Source of the DNA: Eutreptiella sp. 'Long Island Sound 2002'
Lineage: Eukaryota; Protista; Euglenida
Assembly: GCA_964036045.1 (NCBI GenBank)
Contig: OZ038378.1
Coordinates: 59,830,001-59,894,000 of the forward strand
DNA length: 64,000 nucleotides
Direction of reading: 5' to 3'
Shown here: one piece after another, positions 2,416-56,625 of the stretch
How the letters are laid out: every line of letters starts with the position of its first letter
Position numbering within the stretch: the stretch's first letter is position 1
The notes under the pieces: model-generated
What the model saw: the letters and a program-made list of their open reading frames with translations, nothing else
The model's database searches: none
What the model was told of the DNA's origin: nothing
Position numbers and translations under genes: made by a program

Positions 2416-2449
2416 ATAGGCACAAACAAGGCAAATGGAACATTTTGTT

Positions 2450-5050: not shown

Positions 5051-5139
5051 ACACGCTACACGGTGGGCATCCTACACAATGCATAGTGCGCACTCTCCAC
5101 CATGAACGTTGCACACTCCTACGCCCATCTCACACCCAC

Positions 5140-8100
5140 CGCATGGTGGAGCATACTTGGGGCCTCCAGATCTCCGGCTTGGTGTGAGCAAAAAGCCGAA
5201 GATAAAGTTTTGGTGAGTGCTACTGGCCGGGGCTTTACAAAAATACGTTACTTGCAAGAAACTGAAACGGTGGGCCCCTGGATAGGGGCGGATAGCCGAG
5301 CCCATTTCGAGCCTCCATATCTTTGTTTTGCTTTGGGCAAAAAGCCTAAAATCAAGTTTTTGTGAGAGCTACTGGTCGGGGCTTTACAAAAATGCTTGGT
5401 TTGCAAGAAACTGGTACAGTGGGCCCCTGGACAAGGGCAGATAGGCGAGCACATCTTGAGCCTCCACATATCTGTGTTGCCGTGTGTGCAAAGCCTAAAA
5501 TCAACTTCCGGTGAAACCTGCTAGTCCGTGCTTTCCAACATTGCCTTTTTCGCAGGAAACTGACATAGTTGACCCCGGGAGAGGGGCGGATAGTCGAGCA
5601 CGTTTCGAGCCTCTTGATCTTTGTGTTGGTGTGAGCGAATAGCCCAAAATCTATTTTTGGTGAGAGCTAGTGGTCCGCACTTTCCAAAAATGCCTTACTT
5701 GCAAGACACGACAACAGTGGGCCCCTTCTGGTGCATGGATAGGGGTGTACAGTGGAGCATACGTGGGGTCCCCACATCTCATGCCTGGTGTGAACAACTA
5801 GCCTACAATACAATTATGGTGAAAGCTATTGGTGGGGGCTTTGCAAAAATGCTTTATGTGCAGGCAACTAAAACAATTGGCCCCTCGACACGGGCGGATA
5901 GTCGAGCGCATTTCGAGCCTCTAGATCTCAGGCGTGCCTTGAGCAAAAACCCTAAAATCAACTTCTTGTGAGAGCTAGTGCTGCGGTCGTACCAAGATGC
6001 CTTACTTGCAAGATACTGAAATAGTTGTCCCCTGGACAGGGGTGGATAGTCGAGCACATTTGGAGCCTCTCTGTTTGTGTGATCAAATAGCCTAAAATGA
6101 ACTTCTGGTGAGTGCTACTGGTTGGTTTTTCCAAAAATGCTTTGTTTGCAGGCCACTGAGATAGTGGGTCCTTGGACGCGGGCGGATAGTTGAGCACGTT
6201 TCGAGCCTCCGGATCTCAAGCTTGTTGTGAGCAAATACCGTAAAATCAACTTCTGGTGAGATCTACTGGTCGGGGCTTTTACTTGCAGGAAACCGCAACG
6301 GTGGGCCCCTGGACAGGGGAGGATAGTCAGGCACGTTGCGAGCCTCCACATCTTTGTGTTGGTGTGAGCAAATACCCTAAAATCAACTTTTCTTGAGAGC
6401 TACTGCTCGGGTATTTCCAAACATGCTTTTTTGCAAGAAATTGAAACTGTGGGCCCCTGGATGGGGGCGGATAGTCGAGCACATTTGGAGCCTTCAGATC
6501 TCAAGCCTCGTGTGAGCAAATAGCCTAAAATCAACTTATAGTGAGAGCAAGGTACTGGTCGGGGCTTTACAAAAATTCTCGTTTTGCAGGAAACGGAAAC
6601 AGGGGACCCTCGGACAAGGGCTGTTGGTGGAACACATTCTGAGCCTCCTAATCTTAGGCTTGGTGTGAGCAAATAGCCTGAAATCAACTTGTGGTGAGAG
6701 CTACTGGTTGGGGCTTTACAAAAATGCCTTGTTTGCAAGAAACCGAAAAAGTGGGCCCTTGCACGGGGGCGGATAGTCGAGCACATGCCGAGCCTCCAAA
6801 TCTAAGGCCTTGTGTGAGCAAATCGCCTAAAATCAACTTTTGGTGACATCTACTAGTCGGGGCTTTACAAAAATGCCTCGTTTGCAGGAAACTGAAACAC
6901 TGGGCCCCTGTACAAAGGCGGCCAGTCGAGCACCCTTGTGGCCGCCAGATCCCAGCCCTCTTTTGAGCAAAAACCCTAAACCAAACTTCTGGTGAGGGCT
7001 ACTGGTCAGGGCTTTACACATATGCCTACTTGTAGGGCACTGAAAAAGTGGGCCCCCGGCCATAGAGGATAGTCGAGCACATTTGGAGCCCCCAAATCTC
7101 TTTTTTGCTGTGCGCAAAAAGCCTAAAATCAAGTTGTTGTGAGAGTCACTAGTTGGAGCTTTACAAAAATGCTTCGTTTGCAAGAAACAAAAACAGAGGA
7201 CCCTTGCACAGGGGCTGATCGTCGAGCACATTCCGAGCCTCCAAATCTGAGGCTTGCCGTGACCAAATAGCCTAAAATCAAGGTCTGGTGAGAGCTAGTA
7301 ATTGAGGCGTTACCAAAATGCGTGGTTTGTAGGAAAGTAAAATAGTGGGCCTCTGGACAGGTGGGATAGTCGATCATACTTGCGGCCTCCAGATCTCAAG
7401 CCTGGTGTGAGCAAAAAGCATGAAGTCAAGTTCCGGTGAGAGCTACTAGTCGGGGCTTTACAAAAATGCTTTGTTTGCAAAAAACTGGTACAGTTGGCCC
7501 CTAGACAGGGGTAGATAGTGGAGCACATTTCGAGCCTCCAGATCTTTATCATTCTGTGCGCGCAAGGCCTAAAATCCAAATTTGTTGAAAGCTACTAGTC
7601 CGGGCATTTCAAAACTTCCTTGTTTGCATAAAACTGACATACTGGCCTCATGGACAAAGGCGGAAAGTCGAGCACATTTCCAGCCTCTGGATCGTTGTGT
7701 TGGTGTGAACGAATAGCCTAAATTCGAGTTTTGGTGAGAACTAATGGTCGGGGCTTTCCAAAAATGCCTTACTTGCAAAATACTAAAACCCTGGGCCTGT
7801 GGACAGGGGCGGATGGTCGAGCATATTTGGAGCCTCCAGATCTCAAGCCTGGTGTGCGGGAATAGCGTACCATAATCTTCTGGTGCGAGCTACTGGTTCG
7901 GGCTTTTCAGAAACTTCTTGGTTTGCAGGAAACTGAGAAAGTGGGCCCCTGGACAGGGGCGGATAGCCGAGAACATTTGGAGCCTTCAGATCTCAAGCTT
8001 GCTGTGAGCAAATAGCCCAAAATCAACTTCTCGTGAGAGCTACTAGTCCGGGCTTTACAAAAATTCCTTGCTTGGAGGAAACTCCTATAGTTGACCCCTG

Positions 8101-10505: not shown

Positions 10506-10522
10506 ACAAAAGCAGCAGCAGT
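10460..10522 (+). repeat. (AGC)n/(AAC)n trinucleotide microsatellite
   Basis: agcagcagcagcagcagcagcaacaacaacaaaagcagcagcag is seen directly. Confidence 0.85.
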
Positions 10523-13308
10523 GACAATAGTTGTGAACGTCCCTCTGGCGCCGGCTCAAATAATGGTGGGCAAGATGTATCCGGTGGCTGCACTGTTAGT
10601 GCCACCGATTCTGATTCGTCCACGCCATCAGGCAGCAACACAGAAACCCTATCGCGAAGCAAGATGTGGATGCCATGTCCAGCGATGCATGTCCCATCCG
10701 TATGCTAAGTGAAGGAGAGTAGAGCGATCGCACTTCAAGGTAAGTAAAAACATTATTCTTGCCTTTCTTTTTGGCATGTGTGTTTGCATTGCCTGGGTAT
10801 AACGGCATCTCTTATGGTACGCAAAGATATTGGAAACACACCTGGAAGTTGTCAAAATGGCTCGGAAAAACGCTCGGAAGTTTTGGCCGCGAAAGCGGCT
10901 CAAAAAAACGCAACCAACATTGGTAGCGATAACATGGGGACTTTCCGGCCAAGATGCCTAGGGACGCTCGGAAGAAATTTTCCATGCTAAGTTGCTTGCA
11001 ATTTTCGAAATTGACCGTGCGACATGAGTCACATTTGGTGAGCATACATGGGTGGCATTTTCAAAAATCCTAAGCAATATGAGTAGCTTTCCTCAGCGAC
11101 TTGTGGTGAAAAGGGTGGGTGTCAAAATGCTCAAGTGGCAAGAAAATGGGTAAACTTGGTTTGGTCCACCGTCCAATGTTTCTTTTTCTTGGTAGGAAGA
11201 GTTGGGAGAGCTAGTTCAAAGGCTAGGGCTCGCGGTACAATTTGTTTAGGTTTATGAGGCGGTGGGTGCAACGGGAATAGCATGAACGGAGTAGCTAGTG
11301 CTACAAGGGCTGTGTGCAAGTGTGGTGTGGCAACATACCCGGTAGCAAATTGAGGCATGGCCGACGGCAGCTTTTGGGACAATCCGCTTGAGTACATTGG
11401 TCACAATGAGGGGTGTGTTACCACGTCTCATATGGAAATGAACGCGGCTGCAGGGACAAGTTAGCGTCAAATGAGGAAGTGATGAGGATCATCAGTTGGT
11501 GTTAAGCGCATGTGGGGTAACGTGTGCGTATTGGAGTTGATGGAAGCACGGCCGTCCATCATTGGTGGTACGACCTTAGCATCCACATCGGGGTAGGGTA
11601 TTGGGTACCACACTCCCACCTTTGCTTGCTTCAGTGACTCGGAGCCATGGGTGCTATTTGGGGGGTAAGTTTTTGGAATCGGAGTGCACAAGATGCAAGT
11701 GGTTGGAGGGATGATCAAGTCAACACCGGTGGCGGGTCATGGGGGGGGGGGGGTGATTCGCGCAGTGCGCGAGCAATTCAACTATTTAGCCGTTTGGCCA
11801 TACTAGAAACCCATATTTTGTGATACTAGGGCGTCATTGTTGGTTGAAAACAAGTTTTTGATGCTTCTTCCACTACACATGAGTACAAGAAGGTTAAGCT
11901 GGAGAGAAGATAGAAGGAGTCTTTCTGGGTGCCTTGAGTGCCGAACAACGTGGTCCACACCGGCACCCAAGTCGACAAGTGGAGTCATCTGGGGTCACTC
12001 TCGAAGTAAGAATTTGCATGCTAACGATTTGGTACACATGCCGTTCAACACCAAACGTATGGAAGGACCCTACGAGCAGCTCAAGTTTGGGAACGACTTG
12101 AAGGAGGAGTAGTTGTAGTTGATGGCGAAGAATGGGAATGGGACGAAAGATTGGTGAATGACAAGGACTACAAGCCGACTATGCAATTGAAGCGCACACC
12201 CCTATTATGCCAAGTGTCACGTGTTTTGTCCATGGCAGTTTTGTGCACGTATATGGTGCACACCATGTTCAGCGCATTTTGCATATTTTGCACGTTGGCT
12301 TCACCCGTGTCCCTAGCGCCAAGTGCCATGCCTTTTCCGTGCTCTACAATTGGCTCTTCACATGTCCCTGTGCTACTTCTAGATGTCTAGTGTGGAAGTG
12401 GACCCCGGCTGCTGTCAACCACAATACCCTTCTTACTAGGTGTTGCATGAGTACCACCAGTACCAATAGCCGTATGAGGGAGACCGTTGGCCGTACCCAC
12501 TGTACATGTCACCCCCACCCCCACACATAGACATGCACAACTTCTACACTTGTATATTCGGTCCTATTTTGATTCCACGTGAGTCAGATGGGTTGGGCTC
12601 ACACACAATTATCATTGATCACAAGGTTAGAAAATTTCTTGAATTTTGCCACCCAAAAAGGTGGCAAGCCATCTCAAAACCACTAAAATTCCGAAGTCGG
12701 ACTATGAACTATTGTGCATCAAGTGCCGAAAAGATGGTCAACACCCGCAAACTCCGGGTGAAATCCAAGAGGTATTGAACCAACGAGCCATAACTCCCCA
12801 ACCCGACATGGTTACCAGAGGACAACAATAGCTATTATGTCAATCAACCTCGATCAGTTCAAGGTGCCATAGGGGGAATCCTTGCGCTTTGGGGATATGA
12901 CACATTTGTATTTTCACCCAATTCCACCTAGTTTTGCAATTTTTGACCTTTTTTCACACATGTTTTATGGGAAGCAAAGGGAGCTTGCACCTGTGTCGAG
13001 CTAGGGTAGCGGAGGTGGCCTGATTTTGAGACCGTTTGGAAGGGGTGAGCTTGGTGCTCTTCGGGGGGCGATGTAGTGTAAGAGTACCACCAAGGTCAGC
13101 GCGCACTGCATTGTAGAAGTAGCAAAAATGGAAGTAGGGCCAACGCAGGAGGAGGTATTAGCAACAAGAACAACCACAGAAGCACAACAGCAACAGTGAC
13201 GATAAGCAAAGCAAGGTGACAAAGCTGAAGAGCGCACCGAAGAAGTAGAAGGAGGAGAAGGAGAAGAAAGACTTAATCTCAAGAAAGGACGCTATTCAAG
13301 GTGGACAA

Positions 13309-14700: not shown

Positions 14701-15949
14701 TCATTTTGTGTGAACGTTATGAACGGGTTCTAGGGACATTTTCAGCAAAAAAAAAACAGCCGTTTTTGTCTGTCTTTTGGCGCAGTAGATGTGCTGGGTG
14801 GGGCAGTGTGCATGTGGGTGGGACAGTTTGTGCTGTCGGAGGTACCATGTTTGGCGCTGATTGTGATGCAGCTTGCTGTCAGGTTGAGCGAGCCCAGCGA
14901 GCAAGGAGGCCTCTCGAGCGAGCAAATCGAGCGACCAAGCCTGAGGCAGTAGTGCACGTAGGGATGCATGTATGGGTGTGGGCGCTGTGGGGGGATTCAA
15001 CGGCAAAATGTGCAGAAACCCTATGCACCACCGATGGATACCACTTGGTGATCTGGCACCTTCCGGTCCTGTGTTATATTTTTGATGTCAGTGGTAGTGG
15101 ACACCCTCAAAATTTCACTGCGGTGGGAACGCCGTTGTACGAAGCATGCTGGCACCAGCATGGGAGGGACCCCAAGTGGCAACCTGTGCTTTGCTCTCAT
15201 TCTAAGCCCCTGCAGTACACGGGTTGTCTCAAGTGTCTGCTTCCCACATCGGGGTTGCCATAAAGGCAGAGTAAGTGTGTACATCTGGGGGTATTGGCCT
15301 GAATTTTCAGAGGACTGTGCCCTCCGCTCATCCACTTCCCACTTCTGCACTGTTCAATGCTTTTTCATCGCTATGATAACACCTCTAATGTTTCAGGGCT
15401 GGGACACGCACCTTCTAAATGACTTCATTCAGTGCTGTTGCAAGGGCAAACGGTTCAACCAAACCAAAGAGGTGTGTTGCTGTGTTTATACCCAACCACA
15501 GCCCCACATGTTTGCATCCCTAAAGAACAAAGACCATGCAGTCCTTGTTCATCTTTTTTCAGAAGCAGGAGTTGTGAGCAAGAGGACCAACTGTCCCACC
15601 CTCACCTACTGAGAATTGTTTTCCCCAATGACTTGGGACCATTAATGTGGGCCGTTTCCACGAGACCCCTGTTCCTACATCCTTCTGTAGAACCATCTCA
15701 TCTTCACACTACGCGCACTGCAGCATCCCATGGCCTGGCATTGGCACTCTCGGCCTACCCATTGGTTTCTTGCAAACCTTTCCTCTCTTTTTTTGGTTCA
15801 CCGCATATTCCTCTGTTCTATTCTGTTTCCAATTACGATTCATGCTGTCCCCTTTCAGTGACCTCAATACCTGACTCCTCAAGGCCACCTCGCGCACTTG
15901 TTCATCCTCTCTTCCTCCCACTGTACAATGGTGCACGATATGTCTGTAC

Positions 15950-19899: not shown

Positions 19900-20637
19900 A
19901 ATTGTGCTTCGACCCTCAATTGTGCTATTGGCCAACTCTCCAATCATGCTCCCTGACTTCTCCTCCTAGTATAGAGCTGCTAGGAGGGCACTACGCTTGG
20001 AGGTCCAAGTTAGGGTCGCCATTGTTGTGGCATACAAATAGTAGTATTTCCGGTGTACCTTGTGTTTGTGTTGCATGTGTGTGCTACACATGCCACCTTG
20101 CATGCGTGTTGGACTACATGTGCGCACATGTTCGTGGTTTTGGTTTATTTGGATGGAATGTGGTCCGGATGCTGCATATGGGATCCAACAACCTTTTTGA
20201 CCAATCATTTTGCATCCATTTTTATTGTGCAGTACATATACTAGGGGATGTATTTTGCCTTTTGTTACATGAATTTCAACTTCCCATTGCAATTTCCAAT
20301 TTTTGTGCCTGTGTGAAGTGCTTTGTACGAATTGCCGGCACGTTTCATTTACGAAGAACACTATTTGTTATTGCATTTTGCATGCATGCACGCACCTGTA
20401 GGTGTACCTCCGCATCTCAATGCGGTTCCCGTGCTCATTCACCGAATGCAACCTTTTTCACTTTTCCTTATCACGTGAGTATGTTTGCACTCCCCTCGAA
20501 GTGCCCTTCTGCCCGTATGGCGTGTCAATAGGAAGTAGAGCAGTATGCTTCCCCGTTTAACGGCGTGCTGCTGGTCCAACATGGCTACACCAACATCCAA
20601 CCGCATTGAAGCGGCACCGTACCACCGCCCAAAACTA
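19900..20637 (-). pseudogene. Probable continuation of the Helitron RepHel remnant downstream of the nested transposon
   Basis: Removing 20638-27204 plus one TSD joins ...KACVHTS (27205 side) in frame to FGRWYGAASMRL... (20637 side). Weak Helitron-like motifs follow (ALRGE...VIRK, KIHPL). Confidence 0.4.
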
Positions 20638-20661
20638 CTTAGGCCACGCAAACTGCCCACC
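20638..20661 (+). repeat. Left terminal inverted repeat (24 bp)
   Basis: Perfect inverse of 27181-27204. Confidence 0.95.
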
Positions 20662-20835
20662 CCCGTGGCACACTTTTGCCCGGTTCTATACCCAAAAAGA
20701 GCAGTGTAAAAAACTCCCCTTTTTTGAACGTGTATTTTCGCGGCCGATGAAGTTAGGGGTTCAAAACACCCTTTCTACACTACTACTTCATGATGATTGA
20801 AAATGCCGATCTCAAAAGTATGTTTCCCATGATTG

Positions 20836-21195
20836 CAGCTGGGGCTAGCACCTTCCTTGACGAAAAGTACTTGTGGGATGTCCCGCAATTACATCTGTTG
20901 GTGATATTCAATCGTGCACATGTTGGTTACTATAGTCACCGCGTATTGGACATGTCTTGTTACTTTGTATCTTTGGTATCAAGTTTATCATTGAAGCAGC
21001 CGGGGCCAGCACCTTTGCAAGCAATTTCACCTTTCCTTGGTTCTCTTTGGCAGAAAGCTGCGGGTGCCAGCACCTGCTGACTCAAATGGTCTTCTCGAAT
21101 CCCCCTTTGGCTCAAAGTAGCTGGTGCCAGCACCTTTCAATGCAATCGAGTCTCTGAGATGATGTCCCGGACTATTAGTGCTGGCACCAGCACCA
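20836..21195 (+). repeat. Left subterminal array of GC(T/C/G)GG(G/T)GCCAGCACC motifs, four copies at ~60-bp spacing
   Basis: Copies lie at ~20838, ~20999, ~21060, ~21120 and ~21180. Inverse copies lie near the right end at ~26848, ~26908 and ~27125. Confidence 0.8.
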
Positions 21196-21274
21196 ACTCC
21201 ATTGAGCAACCTGGTTAGTACCATTCCCATATCCATTCCACCGATGTTTATCTTCATAAGGTACGTGCATCTCA

Positions 21275-23383
21275 TTGAAGGATAGGGAGTGTGCTGTGTT
21301 TTGCCACCATGTGCATCGTGTCTTTTACTTGCATCACCAGACTTTTGTAATGAAATTTTCCTACTCCGTTGTTCGGCATCTACTACGTACCGGACATTAT
21401 TCAAATGGGTCTACTTTATTACGTGATGCCCATGCTGGCGAGCCTGGGGTTCTGATGTTAGTGCACCTATTGGCACAGGTCCGCTGCAACCGTCGTACTC
21501 GTAAGACTGTACCTCAAATTGTTGTTGCAAGTAAGCAAAATAGGAAGCCTCGTTGGTTGTCCGTTTTCACGAAACAGTTATATATGCTATGGTCTGTCCT
21601 GCACAAGGCTGCACGTCCAACTAGTAAGGTATCACGGAAAGACACACTTACAGGTCAACCTTTGACGCAGGGTGTTCGCCGTGTTTTAGCAAACTGTGGT
21701 GTTGTTACCAATCGCCCTGTACCACTAACTGCCAAGGCTACCTCGGCTGCACAACAACTGTGGTCGTCCATGTCAAACCACCAAATGGCTATGTGGTTTG
21801 ATAACTGGTGGTGGAAGAGGTCTACTACTGACCCAGAGCATCCCAATCCCAGCATGAACCTGACAGTGTTTGCAATGTTGCACACTACAGACCTATGTCC
21901 CTTCCCTGGGCATCCGTCTTTGGTAACCGTGTTGGGACAGCTGGACTCAGCTGTGCATTCCACTGCTACTGCACTTTGCTCCTTGAACGATGTTACACGG
22001 GTTTCGCTTGATGCGGAGCCTGAGTTTATTCGTGTTCCCCTCGATATTAAACGGGACAACGTTAGGTCACTACAATTCCGGCCACTGTTGTTGACCGATT
22101 TGACTACCGGTGGGATCCTTGATTTGCTACACATTCTACAAGAGATCCAGGACATACAGCGGCACACCCGGCGCCCCATGCCCCTAATAATTGATATGAA
22201 AATACATTTTTATTTACTGCGTTTTTTGTACGGGGAGTGTATATGTGCAGTACAATTTCCATGAGCATCTGTCCCTGTTGCCTTGTATGTACGGTGCGTG
22301 GCACCCTTACAAACACACTGCCCTTGAGGTATACAAGGCCTTCTTTCCTATCTTTGCTGCCTTGGAAAACTGTAATTTGCAAGTTGGTGCCATGGTGTAC
22401 CACCACCGTAAGCTGCTCCACATTGAGAAAGTGGTAGCAGCACTACTACTTGTAGGTAACTCTGTTCGTGTACGTATTCAGGCACTGGTCAGGCAGCCCA
22501 CACAGTTTTGCAATGGAGCCTGTTGCTACATCTGTTTCTTACTGGCGATTGGGACGCCAAAACAGAATACGTTCGCAGTTTGAGTGTCACACTTGCAGTG
22601 TGGCAGGAGTGGATGAGTAATACCCTAGGTTGTCTCTTTGCTGAAGAGATTGGTGAGGCCCTGTTGTCCCGGCTCTCCGCCCGGGTCAAGCTCCATCCAA
22701 CTGCATTATCGCAACCCGCTCTAACGGACTTGTTCCTCAGCATGCCACACCCGCGCATGGGCACCAAAACCCTTCGCGGCAAGCTACGCACTGGTCTGTG
22801 CGATCTTTTTCGAGCACGCCTCCGTCGCTTTATCGCCTGGTGTACCAGTCCCTAGCTTTTGTTTGCCCCATTTACTACAGCTAAAACCACTGCTTTTGTT
22901 GGCCTTCTACCTGAAGGACACACGTTTCCCAAGCCCATCCCTGATTCTGTTAATGAGGCTGCTCTGGGAAAGGTTTTTCGCAGGAGTGTGCTGTTATTAT
23001 TATCCAACCGGTCCCCTCCGGAAGGTGTTACTGAGTACTTGGATCAATGCAATTTTAGGAGAGACCCTGCAGAGGTTGCACAGCTCACTAGCCTAATGGA
23101 ACGGTTCCGCACACGGAACAGGCGCGGGAAAGGGGGGGGGAAGGGCAAGGGTAAGGGTGCCCGTGATGCTGATGATGCTGATGCACCAGATCGGTTTGTG
23201 GGGGTGGAGGATGACCACATATCCGTGTCCAGTGCTGATTCCCTTGGCTCCCTGGGGCATCTGGTAGTTGATGTGGATACCATGAGTGATGCCCCCCCCC
23301 GCCCCTTTGTTTTGTTTCAAGAGGAAGACGAATTCAGTTTGCCTCCCAGTGACGAGGAGGAGGGGGCAGTGTTCCAAGAATAA
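21275..23383 (+). pseudogene. DDE transposase, Academ/DUF6589-like, with two frameshifts and one in-frame stop
   Basis: ORFs 21275-22264, 22245-22583, 22508-22855 and 22859-23383 link through 1-nt shifts near 22235 (gggg) and 22500 (ccc) and a TAG at 22853. Motifs: MWFDNW (D 21800), PLIIDMK (D 22193), YGAWHPYKH (H 22302), AEEIGEALLS (E 22643-22657), and an acidic tail. The gene lies inside TIRs. Confidence 0.7.
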
Positions 23384-23847
23384 CCCCCCGCCCCCCTGCC
23401 TAACTATAGGGTAGGGTTACGCTTGTCTGCATGAGTAGCTGGTGCCAGCATTCCCTCCTATTGTTCCTGCCTTCCTCGCTGCACATTGCACACACACCGT
23501 TGTCTGTTGTCTGTCGCACTGTTTTCTGTTCGGTCTGTTTGGTCTGGATGCAATGGAATCAAAGTCTGGCACGTGTACTGACCAGTCACGGAAACATGAT
23601 CATTTGAGACGGCCGTCTCCTTCCAGGGCTTTGGAACAAGTGCGCAATTTACCAGTGCCATGTCAGTAGTAGCGAAGCGGATGCCGCTGTCGGGGATTAA
23701 TTGACTGCGATGTGCGCTGCCCTTCGTATGGACAGAGCCACTGACATACCGCTCAATTTGCGCCATTTTCTTCTGAAACTGCTGTTCCATTACCGATTTC
23801 TGTCGATTTGCCACACCATTTCCCTTCAAATGAGACTCTTCATCATA

Positions 23848-26548
23848 ATGTCAGATGCAACCCCTGCTGAGGGTGCTGGTGCAATGTCACCTCTACCAAT
23901 GACACCGTCAACGAACGGGGGATTCCTAAGCCAGTCTCAGGATGTGACGGCATCACAGCCAGTTCCAGCGCCAGGTGGTAAAGAAGGCAAGAAAGACAGT
24001 ACACTGAAGATCAAGCTCGCGGACCACTGTGAAAAAAAGGAGGTGGAAATACCCTTGGAGAAACTGCGATGGGACGAGAAGATGCAGTTTGGGAAGATAC
24101 GAAAGTGGTCTGAGGATGAGGACCTGAAGGAGCGCCCGCCGACTACCCTTATGCGGATTGTAATATGGGGTGATGGAAGTATGCTGCCTTCTGTGCGCAT
24201 AGTTTGCTGTTTCGTTACCAATAACGTTCGTCGGTGCTGGTGCCAGCATCGCTTGTCCAAAATTGCCGTTGACTTTGATCATTTGTGACCGGGTGCAATA
24301 TCAGTTCGGATCTACTGGATGCTGTCTGGCCAGCACATAGTGGAGGCTGCTCGGCGCGTGAAACTGGAGCTGGAGAAGCGAAACTTGCCCCCTCCCCGAT
24401 GGTGTTCCCATTTCATGGCGACTGTTGTGCGGCCTGAGACCCCGTTGACCATTCGTGAGTCCCTGGCAGGAATCAGTCAAGCCAACCAGACAGCACGAGC
24501 ACCAACTTTGTGTGAGAGAGTTCAGCGAATGGTGGTGGAATACGAAAGGGATACCGAGGGGAACTTGACTGCCAGAGAGCACCTGACGAATTTGTGGGTG
24601 AAAGGTGGATTCAGCGCTCAAGATGGCACACTGGTGTGTGCCTGCCCGTCAGCACGTCCGTTTGTTTGTGGTTTCATCGCCCTGTCAACGTACTCCGCCA
24701 TCTGTTGCCCGGTGTGAATCCTGTGGTACCCCTTGTAGGCCAATATGATAAAGCAGTGGTCTCCTGTGGCTCTGTTGGTGAGAACTTGTGGACGTGAAGC
24801 AGCGTTTGCAGTGCAGATGCTGGAGGCCCGCGGTCATAGCATGACTGTGAATCAAATGCGTTGCTTCGAAGGACAGGTGCCCCCCGATATCCGGACAATT
24901 TGCAAGTTTATGGCTGACACAACCAATGGTGGAGCACAGCTCAAGAAGATGGGAAAGGGATTGAAACTGGATCGGTTATGGAGTTGGCATCTGTGTCATC
25001 CTGAGAACACTCTCACCCATGAATCTCGCCGTATGTTTGCCCTCCCATAAGGATGCATCTGCGGTGGCTGTTCGATTGCAATTTGTTGTGAGAGGTGCTG
25101 GGGCCAGCACCCATCGTTCGGAAATGCCGTTTTGGTGCCTGCAAACAATGGGGTCTCAAAGTTTGTACTATGATTGCTAAGGTGGACTGGGTGAACGAGA
25201 AAAGTGTGAATCCCTCCTGGCAAGCCGAAGTGACTTGTATTTCAAGACATACACGTGGCGTTGGACAGAAGAGGACCCTTTTCCACCGTGGAAATACGTT
25301 GTCAGTGCGCCGATTCGGAAGGATGTCAGCTATGTTGGTGTGCGAGAATCTTTGTCGAAACCACTGGTGTTACCAACCGTCCAGGCGAATCAGGACAATT
25401 TCTTCACCGTCGACCTGCACATGGGTGCCACTGAGGAGAATTCACAGGTCTGTGTGCTACCCCGGTTGCAAAGCGATTCACTGACGTCACTGCTTGGCCT
25501 TCACTCGGAACTTCACTTGGAACATGAATGTGTTGCAGTTGGAAAGGGACTCGGACGGAAAACTACTGGTGCTGCCAGCTGCAATTGGCTCGGCCATTCC
25601 AGCAGCAGTGGCTGGTATCTCTTTTACAATGGTGTACATTGAGCCCCCCCGTGGCTTTACCCTGGGCATCCATGCATTGGTCAGTACAGTGCTGCAGCGT
25701 GGCGTTCTTGTTGCTGTTGCCGGTGAGCCTAGTGATTGTCGTGGCATTGTGGACAGCCTTCGTGAACAGCACCAAGATACGGGGTTCTGTGCTATTAAGC
25801 TGTCAGTGTACCACCTCAACAAGAAGTCACCACAATTTACTATGGGGTGTACTGAAGTGAATCTTCTCTCGAAACATCCGCTGCCACAAAAGGTATCTAG
25901 ACCACACTGCGACCCTGGTTGTTCGGACACGCGCTCAAAAATCACAACAAAATGGACGTTTCACCTCGTTGCAGTTGGGGCCAGCTCCTTTCTTTGGAGA
26001 ATTGCTTTTTTCCCCCCTTTAAGGTGCCTCGATACATTACCGTGACGGATTTCCCAAGTGGGGGGTACCTGCCCGTGGAGATTGTTGGTTACTTGCTGAC
26101 ACTGGCTGGTGAAATGGTGGTGTACCAAGAAATATGGCGGCTGCTATTGTCCTCCTCCCACGCATTGCCCGGGGCCCTCACAGTTCGATTTCATATTCCT
26201 GTCAATGTGGTGGTTGGTATCCTTGGGGATACGGCAATTCAGGACTTTGTCACACATGCTGTTGCTCGATGCAAGGAAGCTGATGGCCTGCCGAATATTG
26301 ACTGGACTGGGGTGACAAATCAGATGCTCCATGGGGTACCCATTGATTGCAGGGGAAAATTCCGCAAGCTTGAGGACGTAGAACAGGGGGATGAGGATGA
26401 GGATGGAGAGGAAGTGGCCGAGCATGAAGCAGACCTGTTGGCCCAAAAGCCGAAGCCCAAAAAAACCGGTGCCAAGCGGAAGCAGGATGAGGAGAGCAGT
26501 AGTTCGAAACGTGCAACTCCAAGGAAGGCTACGAGCAATGGGGCATAG
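23848..26548 (+). CDS. Intact 6-exon gene (698 aa): ParB/Srx-like N-terminal domain, degenerate beta-class N6/N4 DNA-methyltransferase-like fold, acidic/basic tail. Exons 23848-24178, 24305-24633, 24739-25030, 25182-25447, 25539-25892, 26024-26548
   Basis: All five introns are GT-AG with consistent phases (1,0,1,0,0), giving a 2097-nt open CDS. ParB-like: EIPLEKL...GKIR...RIVIWGDGIRIYWMLSGQHIVEAARR. MTase-like: FTMVYIEPPRG (DPPY position, 25641), STVLQRGVL, YLPVEIVGYLLTLAGEMVV (KPxxL..YLI...GDxV position). No FxGxG motif. Confidence 0.8.
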
Positions 26549-27180
26549 CAGTCTGCGACTGGCGGGGAGAAGTCCAACAGTGAAGGCGCCGCTGGTGATC
26601 CTGCTGACACTGTGAAACCCAAATGACTTGGATTTACCAATTGGACTGCCCGAATCAACAGGGCTGCAGCAGCAAAGAAGTAATCATGTTTCTTGATCCC
26701 ATAAAGACTGGTCCAGTGCTTTGCACTACAGCGCTGTCAGTGTTCGTCTTGCACAGTCATGCACTTGTCCGTTGGTTTTGTTGTTACACAGCACTCACAA
26801 TAGCTCTGCTTGGTTTGCACCTACTATTTCTTTTTTTTCCTCAGGAAGTGCTGGCACCAGCTACTCTTTGCCCAATTGCTTGTCTTCATTGCCATTTTTC
26901 CAGGTGTTGGTGCTGGCCCCAGCGTGACTTTACAGCTTCCTGTTTACATGGTGCAATAAGCCCTACATGTGCTTTTCCTCCGATATCACACCTTCAATCC
27001 AGGAAATGGGAACTGGGTTCAATAGATGAAAATGAAAGAAACGTGTTTGAGACCCCCCAAAAAGGCCCTGTTTTTGTGCCTACAATAAGACACCATCAAA
27101 ATGAGCCCACAGACCCCCCCATCTGGTGCTGGCACCAGCACCAGACGAAGATGCTGGTCTGCCACCTATGCTGCCGTGAA

Positions 27181-27204
27181 GGTGGGCAGTTTGCGTGGCC
27201 TAAG
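27181..27204 (-). repeat. Right terminal inverted repeat (24 bp)
   Basis: Perfect inverse of 20638-20661, followed by the TSD AACTA. Confidence 0.95.
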
Positions 27205-28410
27205 AACTAGTGTGCACACACGCTTTCGGTGTATGCATCAATGTGAGTGAACCAAGATTGCACAAATAGGCAGCGGAATCTTTGAGTCCGGAGATCCTCT
27301 GAGGTTGTGAGTTGACGCCACGACTAGTCCCATGTGACTGCATTTGCACCGTGATATACATACGCTGGTATGAAGCAATCCCGTGGGTGGGGAACACATG
27401 GACCCTGGCCCCATGATAGCACATCCATAGCACAACGCGACTGGGGAATGACCCACGACGCCGCGAACCAATGAGAGGGCCGTTGACATCGTGCAGACGG
27501 AGGTGCAGAACCGAGAGCACATGGAAGTGATGCAAAGAAGGGGAGAGGGCTTCCATGGAGTGTGAGACCTGTGGTTATGGGTAGACGTGGTCATGGGTTG
27601 TGCCTTGTAGGAGATGGAGTTGGACGGAATTTCATTTGTCTGACGTGTTCTTGGAGGCGATGCATCATGTGTGAGATATATGAATGGTCTTCGATTACGC
27701 AAGAGGTCTAACATGCATTTATGTGCCCGATGTCTGGTATTTTTTTAGACGTTTGCATCTGAAGGAAGCCTTCACGTGCATGTTGCCCGTGCAAATGTAT
27801 ATGCTTAGTGCACATGTGTCTCGATGACTAGAAGTGTACATGTTGGGTATGTTTGATATGTGTGGTATGATGCAAATGCAAATGCAATATGTATTTGAGA
27901 GTCTTGCCAATTCTATTCGCCAATGGAGGTATCAACCTCCTCATTTTCTTTTGCAATGCGCCGACGCCCAAGTAAACCCCTGACCTCATTTCTTTTTGGA
28001 GCATTTGAGCAATCCGTTGCATAGGACATTTTCGTGCTACTCAGAACAACCACCTGGTCAATGTCAATAATGCTATTCACATTGAGTACATGTTGCCTAG
28101 TCAGTAATCAACTTGCACGCTGTCCGGGCACGGGTTGCCTGCGAGAGAGCCGCACAGGGCTGTTCCCATGTATAATTGACTGGAGTCTGACACTCGACGT
28201 TGTGAAGTGGGTCGCAAGAGCTCACGGCGAGTACAAAGTCCTTTGTTGCTGCTTCTTTAGACAAGCCTATTGATCGACTCCGTGGTGCTACTTTAGCTGC
28301 AGCTTGCCTCCCATGGGGAGGGGCCCGTGCTCGGGCCTGCGCTGCGTTGAGGCACATGTGCCTCCAACCGGTGGCCATGGGAATTTACCACGGCATTTCA
28401 AGCGAGAAGA
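27205..28410 (-). pseudogene. Helitron RepHel remnant, Rep C-terminal part
   Basis: Frameshifted motifs RGVVGHSPVALCYGCAIMGPGS, YQRMYITV and VNSQPQRISGLKDSAAYLCNLG resemble the Helitron2-type NGxVVxFxP..LGCN, Y..Y..K and EISA..AAAYL blocks. The segment is collinear with the HUH segment at 31.5-32.4 kb. Confidence 0.5.
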
Positions 28411-28414
28411 TTCA

Positions 28415-29238
28415 TTTGTAGGATGATCATCCTAAAAACCGCCCAAAAACGGCAACTTTTGGACACTAAATCGGCCGTAGAATGGGCTAGACGGCTCAAA
28501 ATGCAACGAAACTTGTTTGTTGTGACGCGTGTTGGCTCCCCCGTAGTTTTGAGTTACTTGGATGCCGGTGTTCAGCCACATGGCTGTCACAAAGACTTTT
28601 GGACCGCCTGCTGCTGCTGCTTGCTGCTGCTTGCTTGCTGCTGCTTGCTGCTGCTAAATTTGTGTTGCTCATCCTTGGACCCTAAGAAGGGGTGTAAAAC
28701 CTCGACGGGGTAAACCCAGCTCGTTAATCAACTCGAACTAGCAGTGAGCCGGGTCCTAGTCTTGCCTAACGCATTGGAAATCGCCCCGGAGGAAGGGCTG
28801 CTTGCTTTGGAGATGTGCGTCCATCGTGAGGACGATCGCCCTCACACAGGGCGCAAAAACGGCTCATGTTCACCTCAAAATGGACCACCGCGTGGAACCA
28901 CGGCATGGTACCTGCCTTATTGAACACCCATTTGCCATCACTTAATAGCCCAATCGCCATGGACGAACACCGGCCCTCATTGAAAACACCAACTTCACAC
29001 ACCTCCGATCGTGCTGAGTTTTCAGGATGATCGTACTAAAAGCAGCCCCAAAACGGCCATTTTTGGACACTAAATCCACCAAAGAACGGGGTAGACGGCT
29101 CAAACCGGCGCGGAACCTGTTTGTGGTGGTGCACGTTTCCTCTTCGGTCGTTTTGAGCTACTTGGATGCCGTTTTTGAGCCACGGTGTCGTTCCAAGGAC
29201 TTTTGGACCACCTGTTGCTGCTTGCTACTTGCTGCTCC

Positions 29239-29269
<31 letters not shown>

Positions 29270-31492
29270 TGCTAAAATGTGTTGCTCATCCTTGGACCAT
29301 AAGAAGTGGTGTAACACCTCGACAGGGTAAACCCAGCTCGGTAATCAAGACTCACGACTGGGACTGAGCCGGGTCGTAATTTCTCATTGGAAATCACCGT
29401 GGAGCAAGCCGGCTTGCTTTGTAGATGTTCCTCCACGGTCTGTACGATTGTCCTGAAACATGGCTCCAAAACGGCTTGTTTTCACCTTGCAAGTGCCCAC
29501 CCCGTGGCACCACGGCACGGAACACGCCTTATTCTGCACCCATTTGCATTCCTTTGATGGCCTGATCACTATGGAAGAGCAACGACCCTCATTGAAAACA
29601 CCTACGCGGCAGACCAACGGTCGTCCTAAGTTTTCAGGACGTTCGTCCTAAAAACAGCCCCAAAACGGCCATTTTTAGACACTACATAGGCCATAGAACG
29701 GTATAGACGGCTCGAAACGGCACGAAACCTTTTTTTGGTGATGCGCGCTTGGTCCCTGGTCGTTTCGAGCTACTTTGGTGCCGGGTTTGAGCCAAAGTGC
29801 CGTCGCAAGGACTTTTGGACGGCCTGTTGCTGCTGCTTGCTGCTGCTGCCGTTGCTGCTTGCTAAAATGTGTTGCTCACCCTTGGACCCTAAGAAGGGGT
29901 GTAAAACCTCGACAACGTGCACTTGGCTCCGTAATCAAGACTCAAACTAGCACCGAGCTAGGTCCTAGTCTTGCTTAACGCATTGGAAATCGCCCCGGAG
30001 GAAGGACCGCTTGCTCTGGAGATGTGCATCCACGGTGAGGACTTTTGTCCTGAAACACGGCTCAAAAACGGCTCATGTTCACCTCAAAATGGACCACCGT
30101 GTGGCACCACGGCATGGTACATGCCTTATTGAACACCCATTTGCCATCACTTGATAGCCCAATCACGATGGAAGAACACCGACCCTCATTGAAAATGCTC
30201 ACTTGACACACCGGCGATCGTCCTGAGTTTTCAAGAGGATCATCCTAAAAACAGCCCCAAAACGACCTTTTTTGGACACTAAATCGGCCATAGAGTGGGC
30301 CAGACGGCTCAAAATGCAAGTTTGTTTGTGGTGATGCGCATTTGCTCCCCGGTCGCTTTGGTCTACTTGGAGGCTCGTTTTGAGCCACGTTGCCGCCGCA
30401 AGGAATTTTGGATCACCTGCTTGCTGCTGCTGCTGGCTAAAATGTGTAGCTCATCCTTGGACCCTAAAGAGTGGTGTAAAACCTTGACAGGGTAAACCCA
30501 GCTCGGCAATCAAGACTCAAACTAGGACCGAGCTCGGTCCCAGTCTTGCGTAACGCATTGGAAATCGCTATGGGAGAAAGACCGCTTGCTTTGTAGCTGT
30601 GCTCTCAGAGTTAGAACAACTTTCCTAAATTGGCCCGAAAACGGCTCATTTTCACCTCAAAACAGACCACTGTGTGGCACCACGGCATGGTACATGCCTT
30701 ATTGAACATTGAGTTGCATTCCTTTGATAGCCCGATAGCTATGGAAGAACAACGGCCCTCGTTGCAAACGCCCACCTCACACACCGGCGATTGTCCCAAA
30801 ATTTGAGGGTGATCATCCTAAAAACAGCCCAAAAACAGCCAATTTAGGACACTAAATGGGCCATAGAACGGGCTAGAAGGCTCAAAAACGACATGGAACC
30901 AGTTTGTGGTGGTGGGCGTTTGCTCTCCGGTCGTTTTGAGCTACGCTGATGCCGGTTTTGAGCCACGGTGACAGAGCAAGGCCTTTTGGATCGCCTGTTG
31001 CTTGCTGCTGCTGCTTGCTGTTGCTGTTGTTGTTGCTTCTAAAATGTGGTGCTTACCCTTGGACTTGAAAGTGGTGTAAAACCTCCACAAGGTAAACCCA
31101 GCTCAGTATTGATGAGTCACGACTAGGACGGAGCTGGCTCCTAGTCTTGGTTAACGCATTGGAAATCACCGTGCAGTAAAGCGCACTTGCTTTGCAGATG
31201 TTCTTCCATGGTCAGTATGATCCTCCTGAAACATGGCTCCAAAACGGCCCGTTTTCACATTGCCACCGCCCACCCCGTGGCACCACGGCATGGCACAGGC
31301 GTTGTTCTGCACCCATTTGCATTCCTTTGATGGCCCAATCGCTATGGAAGACCAACGACCCCCATTGAAAACACCTACGCGGCAGACCAACGGCCGTCCT
31401 CAGTTTTCAGGACGATCGTCCTTACAAACCGTTCAAAAACGGCCGTTTTTGGACATCAAATCGGCCGTAGAACGGGCTAGACGGCTCAAAAT
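28415..31492 (+). repeat. ~600-bp tandem satellite (5 units plus ~80 bp) with variable (CTG)n tracts
   Basis: The marker aaaacagcccaaaaacggcc...ttttggacactaaatcggcc occurs at ~28435, 29039, 29651, 30248, 30820 and 31425. Confidence 0.95.
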
Positions 31493-31494
31493 GG

Positions 31495-32420
31495 CCGGTT
31501 TATTGCAACTGCCGCTTTATGGGGGTCATACAGCAATGGAGGCAAAAGTTGCTTTTCCTGTAGCATACGTGGGGCTTCAACCTTGTGCTTTACTCTCTGC
31601 TCATAATCCCGGTGAATGTGGGCACCCAAGCAGCGCATATTTGTTGATCCAACACCGCAGCAACGGCTTGCACAAGCTCGCTATTCCCCACAACCATGTC
31701 CAACAACCATGGGGGAACGCCACCCCAAAAGAGACGATGGAAATGGAGAGAGCCTCGGCCTTGGCACTCGTTGCATGTGCAATGGGCCACGGATGTGCCA
31801 ATTAGACCCTTCTTTCGGTTGCACACTGCACGGTCTTTCTTGGTTTGCTTGGAACTTGCAAGACCTAGCAAAACCTCCAAGAAATCCCGCACCTGTCGCT
31901 CAAAAATGTGTGCGGCCGCCACAGGGTTCTTGGATAGTGCTTCAAATCGCCGCGAAATCTCCGGCAATGGAATGCGGGCTTGGCGATCACCAATCGACAA
32001 ACATAAAGACAACTCGTTGTCTATATCATTTGGTGCAACCAAGTAGTAAGACTTGGAAGCCCAAAGAACAACATCATACTACTCATCTTGCGCATCACTG
32101 CAGACCGCTCCGAAGTACTGAAGGGCACTGCTGCATGGCAAATCCGCAACAAAGGCATAACTGTGTCCACAAGGTGTCGCGCTTCTTTTGCTTGGGGATT
32201 TGCTACTGCCTTCTTCAAATCTTCCTCAAGATTCGGTGTGTTGATGGCCGTGTCAAATGCCTTCATTTGATTGGGATTGGCATAAATGGAATCCCTAACG
32301 CTTCGCAATGTTCGCATGATGGGATGAAGAAGAGGAAGCTATGTTGCAGTCGGTTGCGGGCCCATCACCCGATGAGTTTACGGGATCAACGGTTGGCACA
32401 TCCCTTGCTTCGACTGTGAG
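31495..32420 (-). pseudogene. Helitron Rep (Helitron_like_N) domain remnant with HUH motif
   Basis: VPFSTSERSAVMRKMSSMMLFFGLPS / VAPNDID / SKNPVAAAHIF / GLIGTSVAH..NECQGRGSLHFHRLFWG. The E-x-QGRG-x-LH-x-H motif is at 31737-31769. Confidence 0.85.
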
Positions 32421-54700: not shown

Positions 54701-56625
54701 TCGGCGCCTCCATGCCTCCGCATAGAGCACTAGACACCCCACAACCCGCGCACCGTCCAAACCCCAGAAAGAGACACTGGAGATACAGAAAGCAAGATAA
54801 ATACCCCAAGAAATCACCCTAAAACTGGCTGCAAATTGGCCGAGTACGGCCCAAAAACCCTCAACTTGCCCATGACACCCCTCCGTGCTCTGCGCAGCCC
54901 CGACCTTCAGACCTTTTGCCCTACTATTGGCGCGCCCTTGCCTCCCCAAAGAGCACTCTACCATGAATGCTCCACAGTGTGAGTCTCCGACCTATCAGCT
55001 CTGGTTGGTGGTGTAGTGGACCACCATGGCTATCACGGGTAACGGGAAATCAGGGTTGGATTCCGGAGAGGGAGCCTAAGAAACGGCTACCAAAAAGCGC
55101 CCAGCTTCCGAGAGCAGTAAGGAGAAACCTAGGATACGAACGTCCGGATACAATCATCCAAAAAGCACCCTATCGACATCTCAAAAATTTGCTAGGTACG
55201 GGCCGGAGCCCCCAACTTGCCCTTGACACCCCTCAGTGCCCCCGGTAGCCCCAACCTTGAGACCTTTTGCCCCCCTACTCGCGCGCCCTTGTCTCCAGAA
55301 AGAGCACCAGACACCCCACAACCCGCCCAAAAGCCCAGAGTAAGAAGAAACGTAGGATACGACCGGCAAAACAAATGCCGCAGATCACACTCTAAAAATG
55401 CCCCTAAATTTGTCCAATACAGTCCGAAACCCCTCAACTTGCCCTCAAAACCCCTCCGTGCCCCCGGTCCCATGACCTTGAGACGTTTCGGCGCTCCCTT
55501 GCCTCCACAAAGAGCACAAGAAACCCAACAACCCGCAGAGCAACGCAGAGCAGCAGGGAAAAACCTGAGATACAAACCGCAAGACAATTACCCCAAAAAT
55601 TGCCCTACAAATGTCCCCCAATTGGCCGAATACGGCCAACGAACCCCACACTTGCCCTTCACACCCCTCTGTGCCCCCGCTAACCCTTACATTGAGACCT
55701 TTTGCCCTCCCATCAGCACCTCCTTGCCTCCAGATAGAGCACTAGACACCCCCAATCCCGCGCACCAGGTAGATCCAATAAGGAGAAACCTGAGATAAAA
55801 ACCGCGCGACAAAGAGCCCCCGCCCAAAAAAACAACCCTGTAAAAACGCCCCCACATTGACCGAATACGGCTCGAAACCCCCCAACTTGCCGTAGACACC
55901 CCTCTATGGCGCCCGTAACCCCCACCTTGATACCATTTACCCTACTATCGAAGCCCGATTACCTCCACAAACAGCACTAGACAACTCAAAAACCACCCAC
56001 CACGCAGAGCACTAAGGAGAAACCTACAACACGAACCGCAGGACAGGTACCTCAACAAAGCACCCTAAAGACACCCCAAATTCGCCGGGTACGGCTGGAA
56101 GCCCCGCAACTTTGCCTTCACACCCCTCCTTGCCCCTGGTGCCCCTGGCCTTGAGACCTTTTGCCCTTCTATCCACGGCCCCTTGCCTCCACACGGAGCA
56201 CCAGACACCCGACAACCTGCCCAGCATCCCATAGCAGTAAGGAGAGACCAGGTTTACCAACCGCAAGATAACCACCCCAAAAAACACCCTAAAAGCACCC
56301 GGAACTTGGCCGAGCGGCCTTGACAACCCTAGGTGCCCCTAGTGGCCCGCCCTTAGGACCTTTTGCTCTTCTATCGGCACCCCGTGGCCTCCACAAAGGG
56401 CACTAGACACCGCAAGTCCTGCCCACTAGTGCAGGGTAGTAAGGAGAAACCTAGGAAACGAACCGCAAGATAAATACCTCAAAAGAGCACCATGAAGACA
56501 CCCTGAATTTGCCGAGTAGGGCCTGTGGCTCCAACTTGCCCTTGAGACCCCGGTGTGCCCCCGAAAGACGGGACGGCCAAGTTCACAATCACCCAAAAAC
56601 CTTGCACACCCCGGAAAGAATACAA
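51723..56625 (+). repeat. ~210-bp satellite, plus orientation, ~22 diverged units, including a recent ~302-bp duplication (~51860-52480)
   Basis: The unit marker cccttgcctccacaaagagcactagacacccc recurs every ~205-225 bp. Two near-identical units carry an extra AT-rich insert. Confidence 0.92.

Follow-up and report, generated by a model that had tools for sequence, protein, structure and literature searches.

A 64,000-nucleotide stretch of the genome of the euglenid Eutreptiella sp. 'Long Island Sound 2002' (GenBank assembly GCA_964036045.1, contig OZ038378.1, positions 59,830,001 to 59,894,000 of the forward strand), referred to here as the window, contains a whole copy of a DNA transposon bounded by terminal inverted repeats (TIRs). 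The element carries two genes on the same strand, a putative transposase gene upstream and a second gene, here termed the cargo gene, downstream. The predicted cargo protein combines an N-terminal half (N-half) that resembles bacterial ParB with a C-terminal half (C-half) that resembles a DNA methylase with degenerate catalytic motifs. Its features are as follows (positions are those of the window).

20638-27204, plus strand: whole TIR DNA transposon copy, 6,567 bp (inverted repeat I1), with termini and target site duplication read directly
20638-20661, plus strand: left TIR, 24 nt perfect, beginning CTTAGG; about 44 nt at 80%
27181-27204, minus strand: right TIR, the inverse of the left TIR
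21296-23299, plus strand: putative DDE transposase gene, intronless and broken here, with a frameshift near 22240 and a 168-bp deletion at 22480
23848-26548, plus strand: cargo gene, six exons

The transposon family

The TIR sequence, CTTAGGCCACGCAAACTGCCCACC, starts at 20638 and is found inverted at 27204. A 5-bp target site duplication (TSD), AACTA, flanks the element at 20633-20637 and 27205-27209, and DNA contigs from several sequencing runs part from the window sequence at 27204-27206. Copies L001 and L002 have identical ends and different 5-bp TSDs (AAATG and GGTGA, respectively), so that the TIR and TSD are seen in three independent insertions. The hallmarks of a cut-and-paste TIR transposon, namely the TIRs, the TSD and the presence of several copies with different flanks, are thus all found in this element. 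Sequence clusters contain some 70-130 near-identical copies of its open reading frames (ORFs). The four other copies that were fetched are 95-97% identical to the window copy, and all four are internally deleted.

More distant relatives come from L006, a metagenome contig with 25-30% identity, and from L008 and L009, which are other subfamilies of the same genome with about 36% identity. The order and strand of the two genes, with a transposase homologue upstream and the cargo gene downstream, are the same in the window, L008, L009 and L010. The idea put forward in a preliminary description of this locus, that the element is a two-gene system with internal palindromes, has therefore held up: the layout is conserved, and the transposase-cargo pair recurs across lineages. 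Capture of a host gene by chance is ruled out, since the pair recurs in lineages that are only 25-36% identical. L010, a metagenome contig (ERZ27313051 k141_166113, 253-5736), has three consecutive long ORFs, corresponding to a 689-amino acid transposase homologue, a 351-amino acid ParB-like N-half and a 544-amino acid C-half homologue. The last of these is recognised by hhalign with a probability of 95%; this lineage has few or no introns and a palindrome of its own.

In copy L004 the transposase is a 740-amino acid ORF. When searched against the window by tblastn, this ORF is recovered as three pieces in two frames. The frameshift is of 1 bp relative to other copies, and the 168-bp deletion leaves the window gene without residues ~396-442 of the L004 ORF. 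Across an alignment of 14 members, extending down to 25% identity, D169/N170, D250, D300, W335/H336 and E377 are invariant. The 14 members have no Pfam match at E <= 0.1, PF20231 (DUF6589) included, and no PDB sequence match. A language-model feature search returned DUF6589 (score 0.94, 197 of 256 features), which offers a lead, and only a lead, that the transposase may be DUF6589-like; it is otherwise unclassified.

Structure of the cargo gene

The exon model was obtained by enumerating frame-keeping GT..AG pairs and by comparison with relatives. The six exons, with open pieces in three frames, amount to 2,097 nt, encoding 698 amino acids and a stop codon. They are separated by five GT-AG introns of 126, 105, 151, 91 and 131 nt; all ten splice sites are canonical and there is no internal stop. 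The preliminary description had reported a 698-residue, six-exon GT-AG gene inside the TIRs, downstream of and co-oriented with the transposase, and this count is reproduced exactly.

23848-24178, plus strand: exon 1, residues 1-110; disordered N-terminus, then first half of the ParB/Srx core (IPLEKL strand, GKIR loop, helix, RIVIW strand)
24305-24633, plus strand: exon 2, residues 111-220; second half of the ParB/Srx core (YWMLSGQH helix start) and start of a helical DNA-binding-like domain
24739-25030, plus strand: exon 3, residues 221-317; remainder of the helical domain
25182-25447, plus strand: exon 4, residues 318-406; conserved linker W.W.EE..PP...V..AP leading to the methylase-like domain
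25539-25892, plus strand: exon 5, residues 407-524; first half of the methylase-like domain (strand 4 to strand 7), with the motif IV position IEPPR at 25638-25652
26024-26548, plus strand: exon 6, residues 525-698; second half of the methylase-like domain, with the motif I loop SSSHALPG at 26150-26173, a motif II-like strand VVVGILGD, and an acidic then basic disordered tail

The sequence motifs that first drew attention to the gene are located in exons 1-2 (IPLEKL, GKIR and YWMLSGQHIVEA), exon 5 (MVYIEPPR) and exon 6 (LPVEIVGYLL...GEMVV).

Comparison with relatives supports the predicted six-exon structure, in that their single open frames bridge each joint. In L006, one ORF spans cargo residues 67-274 and another, of 423 amino acids, spans residues 326-683, while a single ORF runs across residues 213-532 in L008 and L009. 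All five exon joints are crossed in this way by open frames of relatives that are 25-36% identical, with a gap of 0 or 1 residue. An exon 6 acceptor at 25984, which would give a protein of 711 amino acids, was dropped for that at 26023 (698 amino acids), which is preceded by a long pyrimidine tract and closes a gap of 12 residues against L006. The contigs of sequencing runs X4, X5 and X8, which match the sequence well, read straight through the introns and represent DNA.

Estuary metatranscriptomes X1-X3 yield contigs 95-99% identical to both genes of the element, and so the host or a close relative lives in the estuary. Seven of the eight listed metatranscriptome pieces are exonic, which hints at transcription.

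The ParB-like N-half

An exhaustive HMMER search with exon 2 returned 72 clusters, mostly short ORFs of the same genome and of metagenomes and all lacking a Pfam domain. The family shares the motif GQ(I/V/T)R ... PP ... GQH...A, in which G, Q, H and A, and then a later Gly, are near-invariant. The structure of the N-half was assessed on a model of a relative, P0012 (296 amino acids), rather than on the window protein itself; residues 64-272 of the spliced cargo protein align to P0012 with 31% identity (E 7e-19). Folded with a 72-row alignment, P0012 reaches a predicted local distance difference test score (pLDDT) of 90.7 and a predicted template modelling score (pTM) of 0.84.

A Foldseek search of the PDB with this model places Noc, ParB-CDP (cytidine diphosphate), KorB, Spo0J, sulfiredoxin (Srx) and PadC at the top, with a probability of 1.00. 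The alignments extend over 240-258 columns and cover the ParB/Srx N-domain together with the following DNA-binding domain of truncated ParB, Noc and KorB, with template modelling (TM) scores by target of 0.54-0.61. The order of the ParB core fold (strand, loop, helix, strand, strand and helix at a Gly-rich turn) is present in the P0012 model; IPLEKL corresponds to the first strand, GKIR to the loop and YWMLSGQH to the strand-helix turn. The ParB/Srx likeness originally proposed from short motifs is borne out by these matches, and a ParB/Srx-type fold for the N-half is supported at the level of the model. Membership of the DndB/DGQHR family, a possibility prompted by the GQH motif, was rejected, there being no hidden Markov model (HMM) match and the Arg being absent.

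The methylase-like C-half

The 423-residue ORF of L006 is colinear with cargo residues 326-683 (E 7e-36), and this ORF, with an 11-row alignment, was used to model the C-half. The fold search employed two independent aligners, over 350,542 and 48,161 chains. In Foldseek, the top 50 PDB matches are all beta-class N6/N4 methylases (HpyAVI, MboIIA, PvuII, CcrM, type III Mod) or MT-A70 proteins, the best at E 1.8e-5. In the VIA wide search, which is independent of Foldseek, the first 19 places among 48,161 chains all go to beta-class N6/N4 or MT-A70 methyltransferases (Z 8.9-5.5, model residues 89-300), and the first unrelated chain appears at Z 5.2. Among AFDB clusters the model matches named N-4/N-6 DNA methylases. 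These include two Chara braunii 'DNA methylase N-4/N-6' proteins, whose N-part matches the N-half model and whose C-part matches the C-half model; because both halves match in the same N-to-C order, the whole architecture is shared with the Chara proteins. The C-half can be assigned with moderate confidence to the beta-class amino-methyltransferase fold, in the permuted arrangement that has motif IV ahead of motif I, as the preliminary description had suggested.

The catalytic motifs themselves are degenerate. At the position of motif IV, (D/N/S)PP(Y/F/W), the lineages have EPPR (window), EVPP (L006), EVPK (L009), EVAK (L008), EVAD (L011) and DCRR (L010), in each case following a strand as in true enzymes. 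A Glu occupies this position in five of the six lineages, and the same five have GIH (GVH in L011) about five residues downstream. The FxGxG loop reads SSSHALPG in the window, TTQPELPP in L006, SGSVQLAC in L008 and L009, and ANTPYLAA in L011, with no glycine conserved; a motif II-like 'VG.L(D/E)' is retained. Given the predicted fold, there is good reason to regard DPPY and FxGxG as lost in all six lineages, and their absence, first noted for the window copy, extends to each lineage examined.

Word-based homologue searches found only copies in the same genome or one near-identical metagenome ORF, and Protein Atlas features for exon 6 and the L006 C-half had scores below 0.8 and were uninformative.

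Palindromes

The element contains a 16-bp palindrome, GTGCTGGCACCAGCAC, which has 14 matches in the window with both strands counted. The expected number is 1.17, and none of 100 shuffles reaches 14. Of these, nine belong to the element: each end has three, the stretch between the two genes has one, and cargo introns 1 and 3 contain a single site apiece; none is exonic, and all nine scored sites fall within the non-coding third of the element.

21058-21193, no strand: three copies of GTGCTGGCACCAGCAC with 0-2 mismatches and 60-bp spacing, left subterminal region
23436-23451, no strand: one copy, intergenic spacer
24234-24249, no strand: one copy, cargo intron 1
25095-25110, no strand: one copy, cargo intron 3
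26848-27141, no strand: three copies (26848, 26910 and 27126), right subterminal region

A further copy, ATGCTGGCACCAGCAT, is found at 15146-15161, 5.5 kb beyond the element, and may have been left behind by another copy or be a solo site.

The other lineages have palindromes of the same length and different sequence.

L008 and L009: TGTCTGGAACCAGACA, 9 and 6 copies, respectively
L006: ACCCGAAATTTCGGGT, 9 copies
L010: ACGCAGCGCGCTGCGT, 5 copies
L011: ACGCGTAATTACGCGT, 14 copies

There are in all five distinct 16-bp palindromes for five lineages, with 5-14 copies each. In the four lineages with mapped exons (window, L006, L008 and L009), sites are found only in the flanks, the intergenic spacer and the cargo introns, and the introns seem to act as carriers of palindrome sites. 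Some cargo introns have 4-5 regularly spaced palindromes, as at 8118-8418 in L008 (spacings of 121, 58 and 121 bp) and 1464-1811 in L006. The simplest reading of the palindromes would be a cognate pair of protein and site, for which the transposase, since it co-varies equally, is a candidate as well as the cargo protein.

Function of the cargo protein

Taken as a whole, the cargo gene is rather likely to be the second, accessory gene in a family of cut-and-paste TIR transposons, encoding a ParB-like binder of the element's own palindromes joined to a non-catalytic methylase-like half. The protein would consist of a disordered N-terminus, a ParB/Srx N-domain, a helical DNA-binding-like domain as in ParB, Noc and KorB, the conserved linker, a degenerate methylase-like domain and a charged tail. 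It has been described above that the 16-bp palindromes lie in both subterminal regions, the spacer and the cargo introns; the ParB-like half may bind them there, and the bound protein may mark or bridge copies of its own lineage. Such marking or bridging could shield the element or, like TnpA in En/Spm, help to bring its ends together for the transposase. The methylase-like half would work without catalysis, as a scaffold that binds DNA or a partner, in the manner of METTL14 for METTL3. The catalytic tetrad of METTL14 is EPPL.

Several observations weigh against this explanation. No RNA splice joints were found in the estuary metatranscriptome X1, where the element is represented by short unspliced pieces, one of which reaches 90 nt into intron 1. 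Neither half is recognised in Pfam, NCBIfam or PDB sequence and profile searches with the window exon pieces, 69 relatives and the contiguous C-halves; the Pfam ParBc and the NCBIfam ParB and DGQHR models in particular have no match among the window exon pieces or the 69 relatives. The cytidine triphosphate (CTP)-binding residues of ParB, GERRxR and ENxxR, are not conserved, the family having GQH where ParB has GERR and no Arg after the His, and a CTP-clamp mechanism for the N-half is therefore doubtful. The window copy lacks 18 bp (six codons) at 24118 in exon 1 relative to all four other fetched copies and to the DNA contigs X4 and X5; this in-frame deletion takes six residues out of the first ParB-core helix, and the same six-residue gap appears when the protein is aligned to L006. 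The C-half model is weak (mean pLDDT 47.6, pTM 0.48; residues 100-175 are modelled best), and its top VIA score of Z 8.9 barely exceeds values reached by unmatched models, for which the tool quotes a background of 7-8. Finally, in classical cases it is the transposase that binds subterminal repeats, and the palindromes could be sites of this kind.

The damage to the window copy has a bearing on what can be claimed for it. There is an even chance that this copy is a dead relic and that only its youth has kept the frame open. In addition to the broken transposase and the shortened ParB core, it has a 224-bp deletion at 26920 relative to other copies. Nonsynonymous and synonymous substitutions against the four other copies stand at 33:17, 64:31, 44:21 and 26:7 (about 2:1), exon and intron substitution rates are similar among copies, indicating near-neutral change, and the four copies compared are themselves internally deleted. 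Set against this are a frame of 698 codons without a stop and ten canonical splice sites. The window copy is a decaying, non-autonomous member of the family. The gene had been called intact, which is true of the open reading frame but not of exon 1, with its six missing codons, nor of the neighbouring transposase; the further suggestion that the gene had been kept intact on the transposon is contradicted by the deletion, the dead transposase and the apparently neutral substitutions. Between lineages the picture is different. The ratio of nonsynonymous to synonymous substitution rates (dN/dS) between L008 and L009 is 0.47-0.49, over the N-domain and over the exon 3-5 region, and protein similarity between lineages outlasts the alignability of their DNA. 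Thus, selection, as judged from substitution patterns, is visible between lineages rather than between copies, and a dead relic in the window is compatible with the accessory-gene explanation at the level of the family.

A more far-reaching form of that explanation is possible, if somewhat doubtful. Here the palindromes would serve as a private address, a eukaryotic counterpart of parS and ParB, in which a CTP-independent ParB-like protein recognises only the palindromes of its own lineage, in the ends of the element and in the introns of its own gene, much as in plasmid incompatibility groups. In this reading the dead methylase would have found a new use as a scaffold for gripping DNA or flipping bases, and through the intron sites the protein would feed back on its own transcription or splicing.

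Alternatively, the palindromes could be subterminal binding sites of the transposase, with the cargo protein doing unrelated work, for example in chromatin or anti-silencing through protein partners. The three regularly spaced sites at each end resemble the subterminal repeats of hAT, CACTA and Mutator elements, and both genes are present in every lineage, so that the transposase co-varies with the palindromes as the cargo gene does. However, the sites in cargo introns, seen in four lineages and far from the ends, would be unusual for end recognition, and proteins of the ParB family bind palindromes; in the alignments with ParB, Noc and KorB, the N-half covers their DNA-binding domain as well as their N-domain. 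This alternative is therefore considered unlikely.

It has also to be asked whether the C-half is derived from a methylase at all. The low pLDDT of its model, TM-scores of 0.33 by query and 0.52 by target, the proximity of the best Z to background and the absence of an HMM match would all be expected of a generic Rossmann-like alpha/beta domain whose methylase matches arise from a weak model. Yet with two independent aligners only permuted N6/N4 and MT-A70 methylases come out on top, with the whole domain covered. The strand-4 motif comes first and the strand-1 motif last, which is the beta-class order; motif IV has a local look-alike in 'h.h...LP....hhhhE.P' and motif II one in 'hhVG.L(D/E)' further on; and the same Chara ParB-methylase proteins match both cargo halves in order. 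A non-methylase origin is accordingly judged rather improbable. Least probable of all is that the domain is still an enzyme, either a methyltransferase with atypical motifs or a new activity built around the conserved Glu and GIH, for while these residues recur in five of the six lineages and dN/dS is about 0.5 over the region, neither the aromatic residue of motif IV nor the GxG loop is kept in any lineage, and the EPPL-type homologue METTL14 is inactive.

Relation to known systems

The two genes and their palindromes had initially been put forward as the best candidate for an undescribed system in the window. This does not stand as such, since ParB plus N4/N6-methylase accessory genes of algal transposons, and ParB-like genes beside inverted-repeat arrays, have already been published (PMC12477816; 10.1101/2025.02.11.637652). 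According to the first report, the Ectocarpus element Sola1-1_Ec32 encodes an accessory protein with ParB-like and N4/N6-methyltransferase domains (PMC12477816); for ParB-methylase accessory genes it refers to work by Iyer, Abhiman and Aravind (2011) and by Petroll et al. (2025). Like the cargo protein, the Ectocarpus and Chara proteins (A0A388LX61 and A0A388MEC1 in Chara) are single polypeptides in which a ParB-like N-part is followed by a C-part of beta-class methylase fold, and the Ectocarpus-type protein is likewise the product of a non-transposase gene on a DNA transposon. Their methylase domain, however, is recognised by HMMs and predicted to be active, whereas that of the cargo protein has no HMM match and has lost motifs IV and I in six lineages. 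The elements also differ in size (6.6 kb here and 21.5 kb in Ectocarpus), in the strand of the accessory gene (co-oriented with the transposase here, opposite in Ectocarpus) and in their transposase, which here is of another, unclassified and perhaps DUF6589-like kind than that of Sola1-1. The link between the cargo protein and the Ectocarpus, Chara and red-algal proteins consists of a fold-level match to the Chara entries only, with no link at the level of sequence.

In the red alga Bostrychia, the Plavaka accessory gene PAG3 encodes a ParB-like domain with a 2-oxoglutarate (2OG) oxygenase and lies beside inverted-repeat arrays; its authors proposed that the protein binds its own element (10.1101/2025.02.11.637652). 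PAG3 is similar to the cargo gene in that both specify ParB-like transposon accessory proteins near inverted repeats that differ between families. It differs in its 2OG oxygenase partner domain and in belonging to a different transposon superfamily, and the repeats in Bostrychia form inverted-repeat arrays, whereas those described here are single 16-bp palindromes scattered subterminally and inside the gene's own introns.

Bacterial ParB, Noc and KorB, with their palindromic parS, NBS and OB sites, respectively, share with the cargo protein the fold of N-domain and helical domain, and many copies of a 16-bp palindrome on the same replicon or element. The cargo protein is unlike them in having GQ(I/V)R ... 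GQH...A instead of the conserved GERR/ENxxR, in having no ParA partner and in having no Pfam ParBc match. In addition, the C-terminal dimerisation domain of ParB is replaced in the cargo protein by the methylase-like domain. ParB-like activators of DNA dioxygenases that act independently of their nucleoside triphosphate-binding residues have been described in phages (PMC13229309). A phage origin, which had been proposed for the cargo gene itself, is not supported: tblastn of both halves against 50,697 phage records gave no match, and in structure the protein comes closest to ParB-methylase proteins of eukaryotes, for example those of Chara.

Among methylases, the catalytically dead MT-A70 subunits METTL14 and ciliate MTA9 resemble the C-half in keeping the methylase fold with a degenerate tetrad (EPPR in the window), and both are among its structural matches. 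METTL14 and MTA9 are obligate partners of an active paralogue, whereas no active partner is known for the cargo protein, and the C-half is structurally closer to N6_N4 DNA methylases (MboIIA, RsrI, CcrM) than to MT-A70.

A functional parallel is offered by TnpA of maize En/Spm, a two-protein CACTA element. Encoded by the element but not itself a transposase, TnpA binds short subterminal repeats on both sides and helps to join the ends; alternative splicing of a single transcript gives rise to both TnpA and TnpD, which is a point of difference. The likeness to the cargo protein is an analogy of working only, with no relation of sequence or fold.

The literature search found no paper on this transposon family or on its occurrence in euglenids. 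The family differs from the published cases in its degenerate methylase module, its ParB-like module without CTP-binding motifs, its lineage-specific palindromes that reach into the gene's own introns and its unclassified transposase.

Neighbouring sequences

To the right of the element, at 28400-31500, similar ORFs (28423, 29027 and 29735) and CTG-rich microsatellites repeat every ~600-700 bp; with CTG runs at 28608, 29212 and 30999 and inverted repeats I6 and I11, this stretch forms a longer-period repeat. At 54711-55104 there is a partial match to eukaryotic small-subunit ribosomal RNA (SSU rRNA; model positions 54-428 of 1831, 74 bits), within a 4-kb stretch (52001-56000) of extreme strand skew (GC skew -0.33, AT skew +0.3). 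This looks like a ribosomal DNA fragment or pseudogene apart from a full ribosomal DNA unit. In L004, the pol region of a long terminal repeat retrotransposon (RVT_1, RNase H, rve, chromo) at 10506-12360 adjoins a rearranged or nested copy of the element.

Significance

How transposons recognise themselves and cope with silencing by the host is poorly understood beyond a few plant and animal models. The family described here provides a compact, testable case: a 6.6-kb element of two genes, with a confidently predicted ParB-type DNA-binding half and a different perfect 16-bp palindrome in each lineage. It could show whether a recognition code in the style of bacterial ParB and parS operates in eukaryotic mobile DNA. 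At the same time, it is a natural series in which a DNA methylase domain loses its chemistry and is nevertheless kept, in parallel to METTL14 and MTA9, and it may show what purpose such dead modules serve.

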